DNA from: Prasinococcaceae sp. CCMP 1430
Lineage: Eukaryota > Plantae > Prasinodermophyta
Reading direction: 5' to 3'
Assembly: GCA_013416795.1 (NCBI GenBank)
Contig: RQSC01000014.1
Location: 112,302-176,301 of the forward strand
Length of the DNA: 64,000 nt
The notes under the pieces are model-generated. The model was not told where the DNA came from and searched no databases. It saw only the letters and a program-made list of their open reading frames with translations. Each line of letters begins with the position of its first letter. The first letter of the stretch is position 1. A program made the position numbers and the translations under genes. Below are positions 5,113-57,699 of the stretch, in pieces.

Positions 5113-6599
<1,487 letters not shown>

Positions 6600-40385: not shown

Positions 40386-42422
40386 TTACGCGCGGCCGGC
40401 TTCCCTGTCTATGGTCTTGAAGAGTCGGGGCACAGTGGTCATTGCCTGGAGCGTGCGCAGCACAGTGCTAACGGCGCTCACCACGATGAGCAGGCTGGTG
40501 AAGCCAGCGCTGATGCCAAGGGCTTGGAACTGCGCGTCGAGCAGGTCGCTGAAGCCAACCAGGAGTGCGAGCATCAGGCCGCCCACCACGTTTGCAGCCT
40601 GCTGGATCCTGTACAGGAAGGCCTCGGTGGCCTTGCCTGGGTTCACCATGCCAGCCTCAACACGCGCGAGCACAGCGAGCGGCGGTGTGGCGCGCACGCC
40701 GGCCCCTGCCTTGCTCAAATATTCGGCCGTCTGCTTGGCTTGCTTGCGACCGCTCAGCTGGTTGAGCGCGAACACCAGAAACATTGTGAGCACGATCTCC
40801 AGGGCGCGCGCCGCGCCACCACCGAGTCCCCCCGCCTCCCACAGTGGCCCAGCGAGCAGACGAAATATGACGATGGTAAATGAGGCGGCCACCACGGGCG
40901 ACAGCCCCGCCGCGCACACCTTGACGGGAACAAAGTTTGAGGAGCCACCGCCGAGCGTGTCTGTCGCCGCGCCCACTGCGCTGCCGCCCCCCGCCCCGCC
41001 CGCCCCGCCCGACGCTGGTCCACCTTCGGGCGGCGGCGGGGCCAACCCCATCGCACGCCCAGCTTCGGTGCCCACCAGGTATCGATCGAAGTCGATCTCT
41101 ATGCCAACTTCGCGCGAGAACCACACCACTGGCACTCTGAGCGTTCCCCCCTGCAGCAGCACCGCGAGCACGACGATGCCCACGAATGCACCCGCGTAGC
41201 TCGCCGCCACCGCCGCCGCGTTGCCACCCAGCGCACCGGCGGCGGCAGCCGCGGCCACCCTCGCAGCGGCCGAGCTCATCGTTGCCGCGAAGACAACCGC
41301 GATGGCCAGCGTCACGCCCTCCCCGAGGCCGTGCGTCGATTGCTGCTCGCACAGCCACGCGGTGAAGAGCGCGCCGGAAAGCAGAGCGACGAAAGCGTGC
41401 AGGCCCTGTGCGGGTGCTAGCCCAAACAGCGCGGTCGCAGCAGTGCCCGCCGCGGGTGCCCAGAAGCGTTGCGCGTCCGCTGCTCCCAGCGCCGCCATCG
41501 CCAAGCCAAAGTAGAGGGTCCAACGGCGCGTCATCCACGCCCGCATGCTCTGGCCGGCCTCACCCACCTCGTCGAAGGTCCGCTTGACCTCTGAGGGCCA
41601 GCCGTCGGCCGTCGCGTCCTGCGGGAAGAAGCTCGCCGTTGCATGGAAGGTGGTGAGAAAGATCGACGCCATGAGGCCTGCCGCGTAGCCCACGCCGAGC
41701 ACATTGAGGGCGAGCTTTTGCGTGATCGTGACCGTTCCGAAGCGAATTTCGCGGGCGCGATTAGGGGTGTGGTGGAGAGGGGGGGGGGGAGAGGCGTCAG
41801 AGCGCGCTCGCGGCGGTCGGGAGCGCGCGCGGGGCACGCAAGCCGCGCCTCGAGGCCAGTAAGCGCGGCTCACCTCGTAGCCCTTGTCGCCCGCAAGCGC
41901 GCTTGCCGCGGGTCCGCCGCCCGCCCCGCTGATGGCTGACAGCAGCGCGCCGGAGGACAGCCCCGCAAGGCCACCAGGAAAGGACGCTCCGGACGCGGTG
42001 GACGCCGCGTTCGCCGCCGCGGCAGCAGCCTCGGGAGGCACGGCTGCAGCCGCCCTTAGGTACACGCCGGCATCGCCGGTGAGCGGCGTGAAGAGCCCTG
42101 CGCGCACGACCACGATGAAGAGCAGCGAGAACGCGGCGCGGCGTGCGAGTTCGGATCTCGAGAGAGAGCGCAGCGGCGCGATGAGTGCTGCGAATGGCGC
42201 CCACGAGCCCTTTGTCCCCCCCGCGGGGGATGCGACGCCAACCGCGCCAAGCCCTGCGCGCCCCGCGGTGCGCTCTGGCGCGGCGGGCGGCAGGCCCGCG
42301 CGANGCTCGACCTGTGCGTCGTTCTGTCGCCTCCGAATCCACCGCCGAGCCCTCCCCCCGCCCGCACCCGCGGCACGCGCGCCCGCCGCCAGCACCGGAC
42401 GCTCACGCTCGCGCGCGAACAT
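40386..42422 (-). CDS. SCY2: Plastid preprotein translocase SecY2 (SCY2)-like; probable intron 41873-41715; start uncertain
   Basis: RRAAFSLLFIVVVRAG.F.PL.G, AWLCEQ.S..GLG.G, VPVKV.AAG..PVV, AEYL.K.GA, PGKATEAFL.RIQ, GG..LALL, GFTSLLIVV. Confidence 0.8.
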   Translation of the reverse strand: MFARERERPVLAAGARAAGAGGGRARRWIRRRQNDAQVEXRAGLPPAAPERTAGRAGLGAVGVASPAGGTKGSWAPFAALIAPLRSLSRSELARRAAFSLLFIVVVRAGLFTPLTGDAGVYLRAAAAVPPEAAAAAANAASTASGASFPGGLAGLSSGALLSAISGAGGGPAASALAGDKGYEVSRAYWPRGAACVPRARSRPPRARSDASPPPPLHHTPNRAREIRFGTVTITQKLALNVLGVGYAAGLMASIFLTTFHATASFFPQDATADGWPSEVKRTFDEVGEAGQSMRAWMTRRWTLYFGLAMAALGAADAQRFWAPAAGTAATALFGLAPAQGLHAFVALLSGALFTAWLCEQQSTHGLGEGVTLAIAVVFAATMSSAAARVAAAAAAGALGGNAAAVAASYAGAFVGIVVLAVLLQGGTLRVPVVWFSREVGIEIDFDRYLVGTEAGRAMGLAPPPPEGGPASGGAGGAGGGSAVGAATDTLGGGSSNFVPVKVCAAGLSPVVAASFTIVIFRLLAGPLWEAGGLGGGAARALEIVLTMFLVFALNQLSGRKQAKQTAEYLSKAGAGVRATPPLAVLARVEAGMVNPGKATEAFLYRIQQAANVVGGLMLALLVGFSDLLDAQFQALGISAGFTSLLIVVSAVSTVLRTLQAMTTVPRLFKTIDREAGRA

Positions 42423-42427
42423 TACAT

Positions 42428-42457
42428 TAAACCCTAATAAAATGTAAACCCTAATAA
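42428..42457. promoter_or_regulatory. Tandem telo-box-like motifs (TAAACCCTAATAA x2) in the SCY2/NLR divergent spacer
   Basis: 13-nt direct repeat at 42428-42440 and 42445-42457, each containing AAACCCTAA, in an AT-rich island. Confidence 0.55.
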
Positions 42458-42685
42458 TTTTGGGGGCGCGAACCGCGAGGCGTCGCGAGGGGAGCTTCCG
42501 GGCGAGCGCGTGTTCTTTTTCCGGCGCACAGGTGGATGGTCCCACACCACACGAGGTTGCCGCTGCTGGCGTGAGCGAGAGAGGGGAGGGGTGGAGGGGT
42601 GGCGCTGGGGCGAGAAAGAGGGTGCCGGTGGCACTCCGTGCGCGCTCCCCGCGTCGCCCGGGGAGCGGAGTGGCGGGGGCGCGAG

Positions 42686-45600
42686 ATGAGCGCCCCGGCG
42701 GGGGGCAGCGGCGCGGGCGGCCCCTCCGCTCCACCGCGGCGCGCGCTTCGCGTCGGGCAGTGCGCCAAGGACGAGGCCAAGTGGTGGGCAAAGCTAAAAG
42801 AAACGCTCGGGGACGCAGCCTTTGCAGCGCTGGAGTGGGCGCCGACGGCGCTTGAAGTCACCGGCATCGTGTTCGAAGCGACAGGGCTTGCGCTTGATGT
42901 TGCGGACGGCACCGTGCCCTTCGTGAGCATCGCTAATGCGTTGGTCACGCGGGTGCGCGACAAGGTAGACGAGCTGAGGCAGGTGGACGAGCTCGCAGCC
43001 GCAAAAGCGGGCCGACGCGTGCGTGTGTGGTGCTCAGTGATCCACAAGATGCCTGCGATGGTCTACCAGGCAGAGGACGCCACATTTGTTGCGACCATCG
43101 ACGCTCTGATTGAGCTGGCGCGGCTCGCAGTGAAGTGGAACTCGAAAGCATATTACAAAAAGCTTTACTGGGGGACGGCCTCGAAGTACCGCAGCGATCT
43201 AAACAAGGCCATTCTGGAGCTCGACGTGCAGTATGGCGCGCTGCTGGGCGAGGCGGTGATCATCGCGCTTGAAAAGATCGACAACGTGCTTGCAAGCAGT
43301 ATCGCGTGCATTCACAATCTGCCCAATGGCCTGCCCGAGCTGCTGGGCCGCGAGGACACTCTGGAGGTGCTCGAGACGGCCTTGGCGTCGCCTGGCTCCG
43401 TGACGTCACTCACGGGCATCGCCGGCGTGGGCAAGTCGCAGCTGGCGTTCCGCTGCGCGTACGACTTTGTTTTCACGGACGATGGCACGCCCAGGGAGGA
43501 CCGTCGCCTCGCGTGGTTCTTGGATGCCTCTAGCGAAGCAAAATTGGTGGCGAGCTACGCTGGCGCGCTGGTGGCGCTCACAAACGAGTCCATTGAAAAG
43601 GCCGACAAGGACCCCGTCTCCGGGGACAAGCTGTCGCCGCGGGATCTGGCGGACAAGCTGCTCGCTGAGATCACGCGCAGCGGACGCAGCAGCCTGCTCG
43701 TGTTTGACAACGTCAAGGAGGATGAGAAAGATGGCGGGGCACAGTGGCTTCGCCAGCGGTACTTCTCATCACTTGCCGGTGCGGCGAATGCGCATGTGCT
43801 CATCACGTCGCGCAGCGGCACGCTCAGGGGCGACGTGGAGGGCATCGGCCGCATCCACCAGGTGGTGGTAAAAACGCTGAGCCCGGAAGCTGGCGTCGCC
43901 CTGCTTCTCGGTGACGACGACGCGAGTGAGGATGACCACGCAGCAGCGCGCAAGATCCATGAGCAGCTGGAGGGCCTCGCACTGCCGCTCAGCGTCACGC
44001 GAAAGTTCGTGAGTGACAAGCGTGTCATTGAAAAGGGGCGTTTCACGCTGCAAGGCGTCGCCAAGGGCCTCGAAGAGGCGGCCGACAAAGTCGAAGCGGC
44101 GCTCGCGGCGCCGCTGCGCTTCGTGAGGGATGGCTACAAGCGCTCAGCCAAGGTGCTGGACGTTGCGGCGTTTGTCGATCCGAGGGGCATCCCTGAGGGG
44201 CTGCTGTTACGGGCCGACGCCAGCTGCAAGGATGAGGACATCGACCTGCTGTGCGACCTGAACCTGCTGCAGCTAGGCGCTCCGATCACGGTCGGGATGT
44301 CGGGACAGACGGAGCCAAGCTACTCGATGCACCACCTGCTGCAGGCCGCCGCCCGCAAAGAGGTCGGCGAGGAGGGCGCCGCGCGTAGACCACGCAGCGC
44401 TGAGGGTGCGCTGGCCGCCGTGTCTGGCGAGATGACATCGTACAAGGAGTCGGACCTGTCGACGTGGGCGCGCGCGCGAGCTGCGGTGCCGCATGCCGAG
44501 GCGCTGCACGCGGCGGCGAAGGAGGGCGGCATCGCAGACAAGGTCGAGCTCGCCCAGGTGATTGGAGCCGCAGGCACCATATGCGCCCGCACCCTCGGCG
44601 ACTTCGTCAGGGCCCTGGAAGCGTTCAAAAAGGCGCTACGCATCACGCGCGCCGCGCTGGGCAACGACCATCCGGATGTGGCGGTGACGCGCAATAACAT
44701 GGGCGCGGTGTACCAAAGGCAGGGGCGCTACGTCGAGGCGCTCGAAGCGTACGAAGAGTCGCTGCGCATCGAGCGCGCCGCGTTTGGCGACGACCACCCG
44801 GATGTGGCGGCGACGCTCAACAACATTGGCAACGTGTACCAAAGGCAGGGGCGCTACGTCGAGGCGCTCAAGGCGTACGAGGAGGCGCTGCCCATAATGC
44901 GCGCCGCGCTAGGCGACGACCACCCGGATGTGGCGACGACGCTCAACAACATGGGCATCGTGTACCAAAGCCGGGGCCGCTACGCCGAGGCGCTCAAGGC
45001 GTACGACGAGTCGCTGCGCATCAGGCGCGCCGCGCTGGGCGACGACCACCCGGATGTGGCGGCGACGCTCAATAACATGGGCGCGGTGTACCAAAGGCAG
45101 GGGCGCTACGTCGAGGCGCTCGAAGCGTACGAGGAGGCGCTGCGCATCAGGCGCGCCGCGCTGGGCGACGACCATCCGGATGTGGCGGCGACGCTCAATA
45201 ACATTGGCAACGTGTACGCAAGCCAGGGGCGCTACGCCGAGGCACTCGAAGCGTTCAAAAAGGCGCTGCCCATATTGCGCGTCGCGCTGGGCAACGACCA
45301 CCCGACTGTGGCGATGACGCTCAATAACATGGGCGCGGTGTACCGAAGCCAAGGGCGCTACGCCGAGGCGCTCGAAGCGTACGACGAGTCGCTGCGCATC
45401 AAGCGCGCCGCGCTGGGCGACGACCATCCGGATGTGGCGGCGACGCTCAATAACATGGGCCTGGTGTACCAAGGCCAAGGGCGCTACGCCGAGGCGCTCG
45501 AAGCGTACGACGAGTCGCTGCGCATCAAGCGCGCCGCGCTGGGCGACGACCATCCGGATGTGGCGGCGACGCTCAATTACATGGGCGCGGTGTACCGAGA

Positions 45601-46219
45601 CCAGGGGCGCTACGCCGAGGCGCTCGAAGCGTTAAAAAAGGCGCTGCCAATATGGCGCGCCGCGCTTGGCGACGACCATCCGGATGTGGCGGCGACGCTC
45701 AACAACATGGGCGCGATGTACCAAAGCCAGGGGCGCTACGCAGAGGCGCTCGAGGCGTGCGAGGAGTCGCTGCGCATCACGCGCGCCGCGCGGGGCGACA
45801 ACCACCAGAATGTGGCGATGGCGTATGGGAACATGGGCAACACTTTTGCAAACCAGGGACGCTCCGCAGACGCGCTCGAAGCCTATCGGAAGGCGCACCG
45901 TATTTTTCGTGCCGTCTTCGACGAGGATCACCCCCTCGTCGCCAAGACGCGTGGCAAGATCGAGGCCATGGAAGAGCTGCCAAAGCTTGCCAGCGAAGAG
46001 CAGCAGCAGAGCGCCGCGGCTGCTCCATCCACCAGCGGCTCGGGCACGGCAGCTGGGCGCTCGGAGGAAAGGCAACGCGCGGTGGAGGCTCTCTCGATCC
46101 GCGAGTTGAAGGCTGAGCTCAATGCGTTGCAAGCGATGCCACGCGGCGCGCTGGAGCGCGGCGACCTCGAGGAGGAGCTGCGGGCGGCGCGAGCGCGCGG
46201 TGGCGCACAGCAGCAGTGA
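42686..46219 (+). CDS. NLR-like STAND protein: putative MLKL-like N-terminal helical domain + NB-ARC + ~11 x 42-aa TPR units + short HeH/SAP-like tail
   Basis: Walker A GIAGVGKS, Walker B LLVFDNV, sensor VLITSR, GLPL-like EGLALPLSV, MHD-like YSMHHLLQ; kinesin-light-chain-type TPRs (LGDDHPDVAATLNNMG.VY..QGRY.EAL); single exon. Confidence 0.93.
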   Translation: MSAPAGGSGAGGPSAPPRRALRVGQCAKDEAKWWAKLKETLGDAAFAALEWAPTALEVTGIVFEATGLALDVADGTVPFVSIANALVTRVRDKVDELRQVDELAAAKAGRRVRVWCSVIHKMPAMVYQAEDATFVATIDALIELARLAVKWNSKAYYKKLYWGTASKYRSDLNKAILELDVQYGALLGEAVIIALEKIDNVLASSIACIHNLPNGLPELLGREDTLEVLETALASPGSVTSLTGIAGVGKSQLAFRCAYDFVFTDDGTPREDRRLAWFLDASSEAKLVASYAGALVALTNESIEKADKDPVSGDKLSPRDLADKLLAEITRSGRSSLLVFDNVKEDEKDGGAQWLRQRYFSSLAGAANAHVLITSRSGTLRGDVEGIGRIHQVVVKTLSPEAGVALLLGDDDASEDDHAAARKIHEQLEGLALPLSVTRKFVSDKRVIEKGRFTLQGVAKGLEEAADKVEAALAAPLRFVRDGYKRSAKVLDVAAFVDPRGIPEGLLLRADASCKDEDIDLLCDLNLLQLGAPITVGMSGQTEPSYSMHHLLQAAARKEVGEEGAARRPRSAEGALAAVSGEMTSYKESDLSTWARARAAVPHAEALHAAAKEGGIADKVELAQVIGAAGTICARTLGDFVRALEAFKKALRITRAALGNDHPDVAVTRNNMGAVYQRQGRYVEALEAYEESLRIERAAFGDDHPDVAATLNNIGNVYQRQGRYVEALKAYEEALPIMRAALGDDHPDVATTLNNMGIVYQSRGRYAEALKAYDESLRIRRAALGDDHPDVAATLNNMGAVYQRQGRYVEALEAYEEALRIRRAALGDDHPDVAATLNNIGNVYASQGRYAEALEAFKKALPILRVALGNDHPTVAMTLNNMGAVYRSQGRYAEALEAYDESLRIKRAALGDDHPDVAATLNNMGLVYQGQGRYAEALEAYDESLRIKRAALGDDHPDVAATLNYMGAVYRDQGRYAEALEALKKALPIWRAALGDDHPDVAATLNNMGAMYQSQGRYAEALEACEESLRITRAARGDNHQNVAMAYGNMGNTFANQGRSADALEAYRKAHRIFRAVFDEDHPLVAKTRGKIEAMEELPKLASEEQQQSAAAAPSTSGSGTAAGRSEERQRAVEALSIRELKAELNALQAMPRGALERGDLEEELRAARARGGAQQQ
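44597..45976 (+). repeat. Coding tandem repeat, 126-bp unit, ~11 copies
   Basis: Unit starts at 44597, 44723, 44849, 44975, 45101, 45227, 45353, 45479, 45605, 45731, 45857. Confidence 0.97.
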
Positions 46220-46251
46220 AAGAATAGTAAGAAAATTATCGCGGGTGCCAG

Positions 46252-47329
46252 CTAGAGCGGGCTGAACCACTCCAGCCACGTTGGCGCCAGCGCAAGCGGC
46301 ATCCACCAGCTGCGCACGCGCGACGCGCGGATGGAGCCGGTCACCAGCGGGCTCTCGCCGCCGTAGTCCTGCTCGATGAAGTCGTTGACGCATTGCGAGC
46401 GCATGACCGCGTGTGAGCCGCCGACGCCTGCGCCGCTCGTCGAGATGCCGTCGAGCGCGCCGCTGTCGCGGTACTTGCCCGTCACCCAGATGGGCGCCGC
46501 CTTGGTCGCGTGCGCGACCACGAATGACATGAGGATGTCCTCGCAATTCTTGTGCTCCTCGACCCACGAATACGCGCGGCGCGGCGCCGAGTCTGTGTAC
46601 ATCGCGAGGTAGTCGTGGTGCAGGATGGCCACCTGAGAGGGGCAGTCAGAGACCAGCAGGCAAGCTCGCATCAGGGGTGAGAACGTCGCAGCAGGGCGCG
46701 GGCGCGAAGTGTCAATGCGAGCGACGCAGCGTGCTCGCGTCGGCACGCACCTTCGTGAGCACCATGGAGAAGCGCCCCGTCATGTACGTCGACCAGAAAT
46801 GCCGGTAGCGGAAGGCGCCGGGCTCTCCCGACACGGTGCGAGCGACGAAGCCGACCATCGCGCGAGGCGCCGCGCGCCACACCTCGAGCGCGAACATGAG
46901 GTCCTCGCAGTCCACCCGAATGTCGTCGTCCACCGACAGCACCGCGTCCGAGCGCGGCGTCTTGAGCGGGCGGAAGCGATTGTTGAGGCTCGTCGTCGGA
47001 TGCGCGTCGTACACGACGGGCACGCCGCGCACCTCGCCGGGCGCGTCCGCGGGTGCCTCGGGGCTCTCACTCCACACCACGTGGATCGCTTCGATTGGCA
47101 CTGCCCCCGTCGCAGCGCACGCCGCGTAGTGATCCACCGCGAGCTCCAGCCGGTCGGGCCGCTTGAACGTGTTGATAAGCACCGTCAGCGGCTCCCCCAC
47201 GGACCGCGGCGCCGACGCGAGCGGCGACGCGGCGGTCTGTCGCTCCAGCCGCACGTACGTGGCCAAGCCCAGCAGCAGCAGCCCCAGCCCACCCGCCGCT
47301 ACCCAACGCATCCGCCGCGAGAGTGCCAT
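46252..47329 (-). CDS. Glycosyltransferase family 64 (EXTL2/EPC1-like); intron 46750-46633
   Basis: Type II TM anchor, TVLINTFKR, IHVVW, SLNNRF.P, AVLSVDDD, F.VWR..P..MVGF..R, SMVLTK/.A..H..YL, NCEDILMSF, RS.CVN.F. Confidence 0.92.
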
Positions 47330-53728: not shown

Positions 53729-54132
53729 CGCCGCACCCCGCGCGCCGCCGCCGAGCCTCGCGGCAGCGCGCACCGCTGGACGGTCAGGGTCAGGGTCAGG
53801 AGAAGCGGCGGGAGGCCCGAGCGCCCCGACCCACGGCGCGCGCGACGGCTGAAGCAGTATCTCGACCACAGAGAGTGAGGAACGTCATGTCGAACAGCGC
53901 AACGTCTGACTCAGCGCCGAGCTCTGCGAGCAGCACAGAGCTGGCGCCCTCGGACGACGACCTGGGGGAAAATGGCAGCGAAAGAGACGCGTGCCGCGCG
54001 CACTCGCGTACGAGCAGCCTGAGCAGTGCGGCGTGCACCGAGTGTCCCATTTGCTCGGAACCCTTGCGCATCGCGCAGGCAATGCCTCCTCTCAGAGGCA
54101 ACGACGGCCGTGGAGGCGACGGCCAGCGTGNG

Positions 54133-56250
54133 AGCGCCAGCGCGCTGGCGGCGCCACGCGCGCCGCGCCGCGCGTCGTGTGCGCACTGCCACTCGGCGTC
54201 GCGGCAGCCGCTGGCGTGGACGCGCTCGCGCAGCTTGCCGCCGCATGCGAGGCACATGCGCAAGGCCCTAACGTGGGGGGCATGGTGGCCGAGCGCGACG
54301 CAGGCGCGCCCGCCTCCGCCCCAGCGCTCGCGCTGGACGCCGCCACCGTGAGCAGCGCGCGCCTCCGTGCGCGCTTCACGCTGCTTTCGCCCGACCCGAC
54401 GGATGTGCTCGCGGTGCTGGACGCAGCGTCGGTGGCAGACGTGGTGCTGCTCGTGGTGGACGCGCCGGGCGCCAGTGAACTCTCGCACAAGACGGGCGCC
54501 GCTGCCGCAGAGAATGTGTGCGTGGTGAGCGAGGCCGTGCGCCCAGCGCTGCGCGCGCTCTGTGCACAGGGCGTGCCCGCGCTCGCCGTCGCGCTGCGCG
54601 GACTTGCGGCACTGCCGCCCACGCAGCGCAACACGAGCAAAAAGGCGGCGCTGGCGGCACTCGCGCGGGACGCAGTCCTTGGCGAACCCGACAAGGCTTT
54701 CCCCGCCGACACGGCAGCCGACTGGCAGCTCGCCGCGCGCGCACTCTCCGAGCTGCGTCCTCGGCCGCCCGCGTGGCGCTGCGGAGGACGCGCGTACGTG
54801 CTCGCGCACAGGGTGGGCTTCGAGGCCGGCGCCACGGCGGTGGCGGAGGGCGCTGACGCGCCGCCGGCGGACGCGGCGGTGGGCACGCTCGTGTTGGAGG
54901 GGTACGTGCGCGGTGCCGACATGCACGCCGGGCAGCTCGTGCACGTGCAGGGTGCCGGCGACTTTGCAGTCACGAGCGTGGATGCCGCCGACGAGCCGGA
55001 GGGAGCGGCAGGGGCGGCGCAGCGCAAGTCGGGGGGCGACGTCGCCATGGGCGGCGGTGCGGGCGCGGGGGGTGGCACCTGCGGGGGCGATAGGGTGTTG
55101 AGCGTCCCGTCCTCATCGAACCGCCACCTGCTGATGGTGGAGAATGAGTACGATGAGTTGCAGAACGAGCAGACGTGGCCGACGGCGGAGGAGCTTGAGG
55201 CCGCCGACCGCGAAGCCGCGGCGCGATCGCAGGGGCGGCGGCGAGTGCCCAAGGGCACGAGCTCGTACCAGGCGCCTTGGCTACTGTACGAGGAGGGAGA
55301 CGAGGAGGGCGGCGCCGACGGCATGGACGACCATATGGGCGGGATGGAGGAGGATGGTGTTGAGTCTGAGCCGGAGGAGCTCGTGTCTGAGCCCGAGGAC
55401 GACGGGGTGGGCGCGGGCGGCGGCGGAGACGCCGACGGCATGGTCACCGATGGCGAGCTGCGGGAGTCGGCGGAGCGTGTCGCGGCCGCGCACGCTGCGC
55501 GTGCCGCCGAGCTCGCCGAGCGGCGTGCGTTGGCCGAGGCAGGTGAGGCGGAGTACCCCGACGAGGTGGACGCTCCGCTCGACCGCCCGGCGCGCCACCG
55601 CTTTCAGAAGTACCGCGGCCTCAGATCCATGCGCACTGGCGAGTGGGACCCGAAGGAGATGCTTCCGCTCGAGTACGGGCGCATCTTTTCGTTCCGCTCT
55701 TTCGCGCAGGCCCGCGCGCGCGCACAGAAGGAGGCCGCAGCGCTCATCGATGGCGAGCCCTCGGCGGCGGAGCAGCAGGAGGACGGCGACAGCATGACTG
55801 ATGGTGCCGCGGCTGGCGCACACGTGTCTCCCGGCACGTTCGTGCGCATCCGCGTGGCCAACGTGCCCGCTTCGGCCGCACAGGCGCTCGTGGAGGCCGT
55901 TTGCGGCGGCGCAGAGGGCGTGGCAGCCGTGCAGGCGGGCGCGCTGGCGCCAGCGCGCGAGTGCCTCGTATGCGTGGCACTGCTCAACCACGAGACAAAA
56001 GTGAGCGTCGCGCACTTCCGTGTGACCAAGGCGCGCGGCTGCTCTTACCCCCTGGCGTCCAAGCAGGTGCTCTACGTGCGCTGCGGCTTCCGTCGCTTCG
56101 TGACGCGCCCCATCTTCAGCGACGACGGGCTGCGTTCAGACAAGCACCGCTACCTGCGTTTTCTCCCGCAGCACGGCACGGCTGTGGCCACGTGCTACAT
56201 GCCTATCTCCTTCCCCTCAATGCCCGTGCTGGCGTTCGCGCCGCGCGACG
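54133..56250 (+). CDS. TSR1: Pre-rRNA processing factor TSR1 (N-terminus lost at single N 54132; C-terminal ~100 aa absent)
   Basis: APRVV.ALPL, AARP2CN-like GYVRG......LVHVQG.GDF, NEQTWPT.EEL, VPKGTSSYQA.W, YPDEVDAP....AR.RFQKYRGLRS.RT..WDPKE.LP..Y.RIF, LLNHETK.SV, GFRRF.TRPIFS, K.RY.RF. Confidence 0.88.
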
Positions 56251-57240
56251 CGGCCGCCGAGGCAAAGCTCGCCAAGAAGTGCGAGCTCTACCGCGCGCTC
56301 TCGAGGAAGGTGCTCAGCGCGGCTGCGGCAGGCGCGCGGTCGGAGGCGGCGTGGGCGGCCGCGGGCTCGCTCGCCGAGCTCAATCCGGACTGCTACACGG
56401 CGTGGGCGCTGCGCAAGCGCTGCCACCTCGCGCTCGTGCACGCCAACTCCGACGCCGAGCGCACGCTCGTCGCCGATGAGAAGAGGCTCACCGAAGCCGC
56501 GCTGCGGCGCAACCCCAAGGCATACTCCGCATGGCTGCACCGCCGCTGGCTTTCCGCACGCACGCTGGCCGCCGGCGATGCTGCGCGCGAGCTGCTGCTC
56601 TGCAATGCCATGCTTGACGCCGACGAGCGCAACTTCCACTGCTGGGGCTACAGACGCTTCGTGGTGTCGCTCGCGTCGGGGGAGGTGGGTGGAGGCCCGG
56701 GCGCGACAGACAGCGGCGAGCCCACCGCTGCGAGCGAGCTCGCGTACGCTCGCCGGCGCATCGCGGCAAATTTCTCGAACTACTCGGCGTGGCACGCGCG
56801 GTCGGCCAACCTCACGGAGCTCGAAGCCAGCACTGCGGGAGGCGGGGGCGAGGACAACGCGGTGGACGTCGACGCCGAATTCGAGCTCGTGAAGGGCGCG
56901 TTCTTCACAGATCCGGAGGACCAGAGCGCATTTTTTTACTATCGCTGGCTCATAGGGCGCACCCTGCGTGCCGCAGCTGTGGGCGCGAGCGGCACGTCGG
57001 CGGGCATCGCCGCGGAGGTGCTCGAGCGTGAGGTGGCGTCGATTCGCGAGCTACTCGAGATGGAGCCCGACTCGAAGTGGGCGTCGCTCACGCTCGCTCG
57101 GCTGCAGGCCGCGCGCGCGGCGCTCCCCGGCTGCGACGAGCGCGAGGCGCAAGCCATGAAGGCCGAGACCGCGCGCTTGCTGGACGGGCTCGCGCGAAGC
57201 GACCCCATGCGCGCAGGCTACTACGCTTCCTCCGCGGAGG
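56251..57240 (+). CDS. RGTA: Rab geranylgeranyltransferase alpha subunit (PPTA repeats), in frame with TSR1 and lacking its own N-terminus
   Basis: LNPDCYTAWALRK, ALRRNPKAYSAWLHRRW, LDADERNFHCWGYRRFVV, NFSNYSAWHARS, AFFTDPEDQSAFFYYRWL, ELLEMEPDSKW, DPMRAGYY. Confidence 0.88.
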
Positions 57241-57620
57241 CGCCGTGGGAGAGCCAGGCCGCGGCGCTTTGCGGGGACAGCACGAGCGCCGGGGCGCAGC
57301 GGGGTCGAGGCTCGAACAGCACCGTCGCAACCAAAGGCGTCAATGGCGCCGTGCCGAGCTTCGAGCAGCGCGAGGCTGTTCGCCGCAGGCTTGCAGCCAA
57401 CATCGAGGCCATGGTGTTCTTCTCGCCGGCGGGCGGCGCCGCTGGCGGGGACGGCGCGCCCGCGCCGGGCGCTGACAACAACAACGCGTACCGCGACGCC
57501 TCCAACGCCGACGTGGAAGCCGAGGCGCGCGACATCGAGGCGATGGCCGCCCTCGGCGCCGCGTCCTCCGGCGGTGGCTACACCGCCGCGATCGCCGCCG
57601 ACGCCGCACGCGCCGTCGCG

Positions 57621-57681
57621 NNNNNNNNNNNNNNNNNNNNNNNNNNNNNNNNNNNNNNNNNNNNNNNNNNNNNNNNNNNNN
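57621..57681. other. Assembly gap
   Basis: N run. Confidence 0.99.
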
Positions 57682-57699
57682 GCGGCTGAGACTGGGGCG

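Follow-up and report, generated by a model that had tools for sequence, protein, structure and literature searches.

A candidate NLR-like STAND receptor gene with a helical orphan head and a repeat sensor in the green alga Prasinococcaceae sp. CCMP 1430

The gene and its transcription

The window analysed here is a 64,000-nucleotide stretch of the genome of the green alga Prasinococcaceae sp. CCMP 1430 (GenBank assembly GCA_013416795.1, contig RQSC01000014.1, positions 112,302 to 176,301 of the forward strand); all positions below are those of the window. On its plus strand, at 42686-46219, lies a complete coding sequence of 1177 codons and a stop, in which the list of open reading frames (ORFs), the GC content at third codon positions (GC3) and the colinear contigs of two public runs, X1 and X2, reveal no intron. 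The product consists of an N-terminal head, a nucleotide-binding switch of the STAND (signal transduction ATPases with numerous domains) class and NB-ARC type, and an array of tetratricopeptide repeats (TPRs) as the sensor. With a probability of roughly three in four, this is an expressed intronless gene for a STAND receptor resembling the NOD-like receptors (NLRs), and a member of a small, fast-diversifying family in Prasinoderma. The original prediction, made from the DNA letters, had described an uninterrupted ORF, a tripartite NLR-like build and a green-algal gene, and all three descriptions hold: the gene sits in a eukaryotic genome of the green lineage. Prasinodermophyta, to which the alga belongs, is the deepest-branching phylum of green plants.

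The ORF is open from a GTG at 42599 to 46219, and its first ATG, at 42686, gives the 1177 codons. Base composition by codon position (GC3 of 0.65-0.95 and GC at second positions, GC2, of 0.35-0.5) backs this frame, the head included, for all but about the first 30 residues. Residues 1-29 (42686-42772) translate into a low-complexity leader rich in Gly, Ala, Pro and Ser, with a GC2 of 0.70 that is atypical for a folded coding sequence.

X1 and X2 (11 Mb and 7.8 Mb of contigs, respectively) are both labelled 'RNA?', and their contigs are colinear with the DNA at 42688-44721 and 45673-46270 with zero mismatches, gaps or joints. The intergenic DNA on either side of the gene is uncovered by both runs; coverage by a DNA-like run, X6, is even throughout. 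Judging from these colinear transcriptome-like contigs, the gene is very likely transcribed as a single exon, in line with the earlier description of it as intronless, although this applies less firmly to the TPR array, where the contigs are short and a variant within the array is possible. A small upstream ORF at 42536-42577 (an ATG in the main frame, 13 codons and a stop) precedes the 5' end of the RNA-like contigs and probably does not belong to the transcript.

The protein collections searched contain neither the full product nor its head, and the exact product has no record in the contig index. A paralogue from Prasinoderma coloniale (EukProt) is, in contrast, present in these protein collections; the product of its locus, PRCOL_00002404, is also without a record in the contig index. 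The gene described here may lack an annotation or have a wrong model in the public proteome, or be missing from public protein sets.

The nucleotide switch and the repeat sensor

Searches with the switch region recovered only four proteins, P0001-P0004, which are 55-64% identical to it in the switch module. P0001-P0003 derive from scaffolds of TARA Oceans eukaryotic metagenomes (loci L001-L003), and P0004 is the P. coloniale gene model PRCOL_00002404-RA, which ends just before the TPR array. In alignments and BLASTP, clear similarity to these paralogues begins at a conserved linker, LPNGLPELLGRE (aa 212-223; 43319-43354). The linker is followed by the nucleotide-binding oligomerisation module (NOD) of NB-ARC type (aa 224-600; 43355-44485), which is recognised by its match to the NCBIfam family FxSxx_TPR and by homology to bacterial proteins and to the paralogues.

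All five predicted NB-ARC motifs are present in order, with Walker A at 43415-43438 and the M of MHH at 44327, as had been reported. The Walker A or P-loop sequence GIAGVGKS (aa 244-251) is invariant in the paralogues, as are FDNV within the Walker B sequence LLVFDNV (aa 337-343; 43694-43714) and TSRS within the RNBS-B/sensor-1-like LITSRS (aa 372-377; 43799-43816), which aligns with a bacterial ITSR. The GLPL-like GLALPL (aa 430-435; 43973-43990) reads GHALAL or GHPLAL in the paralogues. At the MHD-like SMHHLL (aa 547-552; 44324-44341) the residues YSMH are invariant and the third residue of the motif is H, R or S in the paralogues. The putative GLPL- and MHD-type motifs (GLALPL, and MHH at aa 548-550) follow NB-ARC order, and only G..L.L and MH are conserved in them across the paralogues.

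FxSxx_TPR (NF040586) passes on aa 218-836 with 335.2 bits against a cutoff of 300, and a pattern scan of prokaryotic genomes yielded eight relatives of the switch, in Chloroflexi, Actinobacteria and one Paraburkholderia, at 30-36% identity. The best of these, an Anaerolineae ORF (L004; BLASTP E 6e-11, 30% identity over 268 columns), passes Pfam NB-ARC itself (35.2 bits) and ends in TPR_12; Walker A, Walker B (LLILDN there), ITSR and the GLPL-like segment all align in register. A relative from Plantactinospora combines TIR_2 with NB-ARC and TPR_10/12. The switch is placed on the NB-ARC-TPR side because of the FxSxx_TPR match, the bacterial relatives and the alignment to the NB-ARC-passing Anaerolineae protein.

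The passing of a bacterial family cutoff, together with nearest named switch relatives in Chloroflexi and Actinobacteria, could also be read as bacterial contamination or as the very recent transfer of an FxsT-type gene. This explanation is close to refuted, since identity to the bacterial proteins is so low, the GC and GC3 of the gene match those of the surrounding eukaryotic genes between which it is embedded on one contig, paralogues of the same lineage carry a spliceosomal intron, and neither an Fxs peptide nor a radical-SAM gene is found among the neighbours in the window. A functional FxsT was likewise rejected: the setting is eukaryotic and non-operonic, the FxSxx-COOH gene-cluster context is absent, and the likeness is one of architecture only.

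The sensor opens with a degenerate TPR-like unit (aa 604-645; 44495-44620) and continues with ten units whose anchors are exactly 42 aa (126 bp) apart (aa 646-1065; 44621-45880), closing, by translation, with a capping half-unit (aa 1066-1092; 45881-45961). The TPR array that had been predicted behind the NTPase is matched by Pfam TPR_12 (E 7e-194) and TPR_10 (E 2e-144), with 11 TPR_10 stretches counted. The ten units have a mean pairwise identity of 84% at the nucleotide level (maximum 95%) and 72% at the amino-acid level. When the 42-aa unit is mapped to canonical 34-residue TPR numbering via the pattern L4/M7/G8/Y11/A20/Y24, the variable columns 22, 29, 32 and 33 correspond to helix-A positions 2, 9, 12 and 13, which line the concave ligand groove in TPR-ligand complexes. 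Column 9, located at the end of helix B, holds seven different residues across the ten units. The pattern is indicative of units homogenised by recombination, with amino-acid variation apparently focused on a few positions.

In X2, word depth over TPR units 4-5 (44959-45280) reaches up to about 135-fold the gene baseline, and in X6 it reaches 11-14-fold. Repetition within the gene alone cannot explain the depth in X2, and other transcripts or genes therefore contain identical or near-identical TPR words. This points to words of units 4-5 being shared with other family members, which are possibly highly expressed. Behind the array, the C-terminal tail (aa 1093-1177; 45962-46216) is a low-complexity stretch of Q, S and A followed by a charged helix that runs to ...LRAARARGG. 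It contains LSIRELKAEL, and its ending resembles that of the TARA relative P0003 (...LRAARARDG). A by-eye reading of the same residues as SAP-like was rejected, as no Pfam family matches there at E<=10.

Several observations weigh against the reading as an expressed gene for an NLR-like STAND receptor. With Pfam NB-ARC (PF00931) the whole protein reaches 19.3 bits and the isolated module 22.4 bits, both below the cutoff of 23.5, and NACHT is nearly equal at 20.8 bits and also below cutoff; AAA_16 (20.5 bits) and DUF7779 (19.2 bits) score in the same range and likewise fall short of their cutoffs, so that on Pfam profile scores alone the switch is classed as a divergent STAND NTPase. Solved structures contain no relative of the switch that is found by sequence, even with a profile. 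In the first nine units the 12 variable columns have a pN of 0.345 and a pS of 0.127, and the other 30 columns a pN of 0.037 and a pS of 0.162 (nonsynonymous and synonymous differences, respectively), values that are indicative because the columns were picked by their own variability, which is circular, and because nine units were compared. That X1 and X2 are RNA is deduced from the size of the runs and from coverage confined to the gene. Furthermore, the X1 contig begins at 42688, two bases past the A of the ATG, which leaves the 5' end and the start codon not fixed; the X6 contig runs unbroken through 42688, and the end of the X1 contig there is therefore an end of coverage and not a branch of the assembly graph. 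With a transcription start farther downstream, residue 122 would be the next in-frame Met. Finally, the receptor reading draws on sequence and contigs.

The orphan head

The head (aa 30-211; 42773-43318) is predicted to be all-helical, and it is here that the gene departs from its paralogues. In the TARA paralogue genes an intron follows an upstream exon, unlike in the intronless gene described here, and in P0004 exon 1 ends ...PWLGPVAM and exon 2 starts GLLRFAEA.... On the TARA scaffolds, exon 1 of the paralogues is called as a separate small protein (L001:9441-10000, L002:129-651, L003:1123-1745), and about 200-300 bp of intron separate it from the called NLR ORF; the paralogue head is cut in two here by gene calling in prokaryote style on contigs that are eukaryotic. 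Similarity to the paralogue, which is clear from the linker onward, reaches weakly into the last head helix (aa 165-210). The match between the two heads (BLASTP E 1e-5 with the linker included; hhalign E 0.47) is confined to this last helix and the linker, and the remaining 160 or so head residues show no significant similarity to the paralogue head (Smith-Waterman z 0.67 against shuffles). A layout of low-complexity start, W/F-rich helix, acidic-hydrophobic stretch, P-[FW]-[VL] and long helices is common to both heads, at a level that is not statistically significant. Since the switches are alike and the heads lack significant similarity, the sequences suggest that the heads have been either swapped or carried beyond recognition by runaway divergence.

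This divergence bears on the idea that the protein is a non-immune regulatory STAND ATPase, a scaffold or regulator of the NPHP3 or MalT/AfsR kind with a housekeeping role. The profiles TPR_NPHP3 and TPR_MalT match the repeats, NPHP3_N weakly matches the switch (E 0.026), and the neighbouring genes are of the housekeeping type. However, the two repeat matches amount to generic TPR_10/12 similarity, and a housekeeping role is made improbable by paralogues that diverge and differ in their heads, by repeats that are nearly identical but for variation at focused positions, and by a head without detectable orthologues.

The original prediction had gone further and likened the head to the membrane-disrupting domains of MLKL and HeLo proteins, on the basis of amphipathic-helix spacing and a basic and aromatic patch. 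The text that it quoted is present (VPFVSIANALV at 42914; the patch KWNSKAYYKK...ILEL at 43130-43222), and an all-helical head is predicted in both AlphaFold2 (AF2) runs; the spacing and the patch as a pattern are a subjective reading. The patch, K-W-N-S-K...K-K-L...T-A-S-K-Y-R-S-D-L-N-K-A-I-L, may resemble the helix 3-4 junction of MLKL/RPW8-type bundles. If the assignment were right, the head would be a true MLKL_N, HeLo, HeLo-like or RPW8 four-helix bundle that oligomerises, inserts into membranes and kills the cell. The predicted all-helical head is of the right size for this (about 140-180 aa) and is placed directly N-terminal to the NOD, with helices, then the linker, then the P-loop in the predicted order. 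Fungal NLRs commonly carry HeLo-like and MLKL-type heads (PMC4986451), and CC (coiled-coil)/RPW8-like bundles occur on NLR-like proteins of streptophyte algae (PMC10952240).

Against this, no match to Pfam MLKL_N, HeLo, Helo_like_N, SesA or RPW8 (profiles PF22215, PF14479, PF17111, PF17107 and PF05659) or to Rx_N is found at E<=10 for five cuts of the head (aa 1-215, 23-215 and 70-215 among them) or for the paralogue heads, within the limit that HMMER filters can conceal very weak matches. KorB (E 0.016-0.038), the sole Pfam row for the head alone, was dismissed as noise along with weak rows for Vps54_N and PEP-utilisers_N. PADLOC and NCBIfam gave no noteworthy match to the head; ZorC in PADLOC (E 0.02-0.06) was also taken as noise. 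No relative of the head was recovered by a word search with aa 1-225 among length-matched full-length candidates, by exhaustive phmmer against 1.84 billion representative proteins or by a pattern scan of JGI metagenomes. In Pfam searches with the whole protein, LRR and TIR are absent among the best 25 of 42 families, and the sensor is TPR.

Sequence searches of the PDB with the head and with a profile of the paralogue heads returned no significant match. The best row, synaptotagmin C2 strands against aa 38-82 (42797-42931; E 0.69), was judged a chance match because it covers only 45 residues, in a region that is predicted to be helical and could not accommodate a full C2 domain. C2 is among the head classes listed for fungal NLRs (PMC4986451).

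The structural comparison that had been proposed, of an AlphaFold model of the N-terminal region with MLKL_NTD, HeLo, RPW8 and CC folds by Foldseek, returned no such entry. The AF2 models of the head have a pLDDT (predicted local distance difference test) of 39.9 from the single sequence and 41.3 from a six-row alignment that includes the paralogue heads, too low for the models to be usable, and the runs agree on secondary structure only: helices at about 79-107, 110-124, 132-151 and 165-210, after a 75-residue leader. Foldseek with the second model against the PDB gives a best E of 0.98 and TM scores of at most 0.28, all to generic long-helix proteins, with no MLKL, HeLo or CC entry. The membrane-inserting helix of HeLo and plant CC domains is at the extreme N-terminus, whereas the first candidate helix here starts at about residue 79, behind the leader. 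The head also lacks a strongly hydrophobic segment, with none of transmembrane grade.

A language-model feature search of the ESM-Atlas with three queries (the head as aa 1-215 and as aa 74-212, and the paralogue head as aa 1-262) gave small fungal hypothetical proteins as the nearest clusters in each case. The named neighbours are MLKL_N clusters (Mucoromycota, Oomycota, Streptophyta), SesA and TNFAIP8, with scores of 0.76-0.86; by the calibration of the tool, scores below 0.9 are leads only, and one third of shuffled proteins reach 0.8. For aa 74-212, 8 of the 10 best named matches belong to one clan. The presence of MLKL_N and SesA, at 0.77-0.85, among the nearest named neighbours for the three queries weakly favours a bundle of the MLKL/HeLo type, but with every score below 0.9 and the negative profile and sequence searches, such an identity of the head is rather unlikely.

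The same neighbours include TNFAIP8 clusters (0.78-0.81), which would fit a head that signals and does not kill directly, namely a helical adaptor specific to the lineage, or a signalling domain without enzyme activity, acting for example through homotypic recruitment or as a TNFAIP8-like lipid-binding bundle. The orphan sequence of the head agrees with such a role. Support for it is, however, as weak as that for an MLKL-type bundle, and no partner gene is evident within the window; an adaptor head is a tentative possibility.

Receptor model, known systems and genomic setting

For the NLR-like STAND receptor, a mechanism can be proposed by analogy. In the resting state, the TPR array and the winged-helix/MHD region would keep the switch closed with ADP bound. 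Binding of a ligand in the variable groove of the TPRs would free the switch, and nucleotide exchange would then lead to oligomerisation, with clustering of the heads as the output. The classes of output thought likeliest, speculatively, are membrane attack and homotypic signalling, which would lead to growth arrest or death of the cell once it meets an infection or some other non-self cue; lipid binding by the head is also possible. A pathogen-sensing, death-executing role with giant viruses as the pressure, as first suggested, would be an extrapolation from other kingdoms. It is rather unlikely that the head is a divergent pore-forming bundle of the MLKL_N/HeLo superfamily, or else a death domain that is entirely new, on top of an NB-ARC-TPR chassis in Prasinodermophyta. 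If it were, helical-bundle NLR executioners with hypervariable repeat sensors would already have existed in unicellular Viridiplantae, outside the TIR-only class described below, and the gene would offer a tractable single-exon system for regulated cell death in a picoplanktonic alga.

The gene had been put forward as a candidate for an undescribed system, which overstates the case, as NLR-like proteins with NB-ARC and TPRs are known in fungi, bacteria, brown algae, land plants and Ulva. Fungal NLRs are tripartite, about half of their heads are unannotated, and pairs with homologous NODs and different heads occur (Dyrka et al. 2014, PMC4986451); their repeats show internal conservation, concerted evolution and diversifying selection at few positions (PMC4986451). 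The gene described here is like the fungal NB-ARC-TPR NLRs in its head-NOD-repeat build, in its 42-aa units of the TPR_10/12 type, in its conserved repeats with focused variation and in having paralogues with homologous NODs and dissimilar heads, many heads being unannotated in the fungal proteins as well. It differs in its lineage (Viridiplantae, Prasinodermophyta), in a head that matches no fungal head family by hidden Markov model and in being known from the gene alone.

TPR-bearing antiviral STANDs are present in bacteria, according to work cited in PMC9806590. Bacterial NB-ARC-TPR STANDs (NF040586) share with the algal protein a homologous switch, the motif order and the type of TPR, and their heads vary (one is TIR). 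In contrast, the algal gene is eukaryotic and monocistronic, has no Fxs operon and carries an unrelated head. For brown-algal NB-ARC-TPR proteins, the diversity is ascribed to exon shuffling and alternative splicing in the title of Teng et al. 2023, cited in PMC11378527. Compared by description only, the brown-algal receptors and the present family are both algal and have diversifying TPR units, but the gene here is one exon and its units look homogenised by recombination.

Within plants, the TIR-NB-ARC-TPR (TNP) proteins have been called the sole TPR-containing class of NLR-like proteins (PMC9806590), and one NB-ARC-TPR protein, UM014_0006.1, is recorded in Ulva (PMC8891106). The gene described here shares with both an NB-ARC and TPR chassis within green plants. 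Unlike the plant TNPs, it has no TIR and carries a helical orphan head instead, and since TNP is the only TPR-type class stated for plants, the family falls outside it. The head itself is like the MLKL, HeLo, SesA, RPW8 and CC bundles in its predicted helical content, similar size, position N-terminal to the NOD and weak language-model proximity, and unlike them in the lack of a profile match and of a confident fold and in the 75-residue leader before the candidate bundle.

Receptors of this kind, which govern immunity and cell death in fungi, bacteria and plants, are thus well known, and what is new is the Prasinodermophyta lineage, the orphan head and the position outside the TNP class. Little is understood about regulated cell death and innate immunity in marine picoalgae, and the evolution of plant NLRs is usually followed via LRR- or TIR-bearing forms. 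A diversifying and very likely expressed NB-ARC-TPR family with dissimilar heads would extend the NLR-repertoire style of fungi and bacteria to the base of the green lineage, and the value of the gene is chiefly that of a family member and of a candidate in which the function of the head could be tested simply.

The GC content of the window is about 68% throughout, and that of the P. coloniale genome is 69.8% (PMC7455551). Along with the P. coloniale paralogue and the compact structure of the genes, this GC content indirectly suggests that the DNA comes from P. coloniale. The main text of the P. coloniale genome paper makes no mention of NLR, NBS or TPR genes (PMC7455551). The neighbours of the NLR-like gene are eukaryotic genes of the housekeeping type, for an ABC transporter, importin-11, Tsr1, TMF, a cyclic-nucleotide-gated channel, SecY and a TLDc protein. 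The SecY-family gene (40386-42124, minus strand) is divergent from the NLR-like gene, and the RNA-like contigs stop at 42124. The intergenic stretch of about 560 bp that the two genes have in common (42125-42687) is probably a bidirectional promoter. Farther along, at 53991-57689, an ORF of 1232 aa has domains of the ribosome-biogenesis protein Tsr1 at aa 118-760 and then repeats of the protein prenyltransferase alpha subunit from about aa 829; this may be a real fusion, or a pair of adjacent genes that appear as one because the high-GC frame is poor in stops. The window contains 703 N, with an assembly gap that runs from 21537 and single N at 6576 and 8300, and its lowest-GC bin is at 20-22 kb (0.57).

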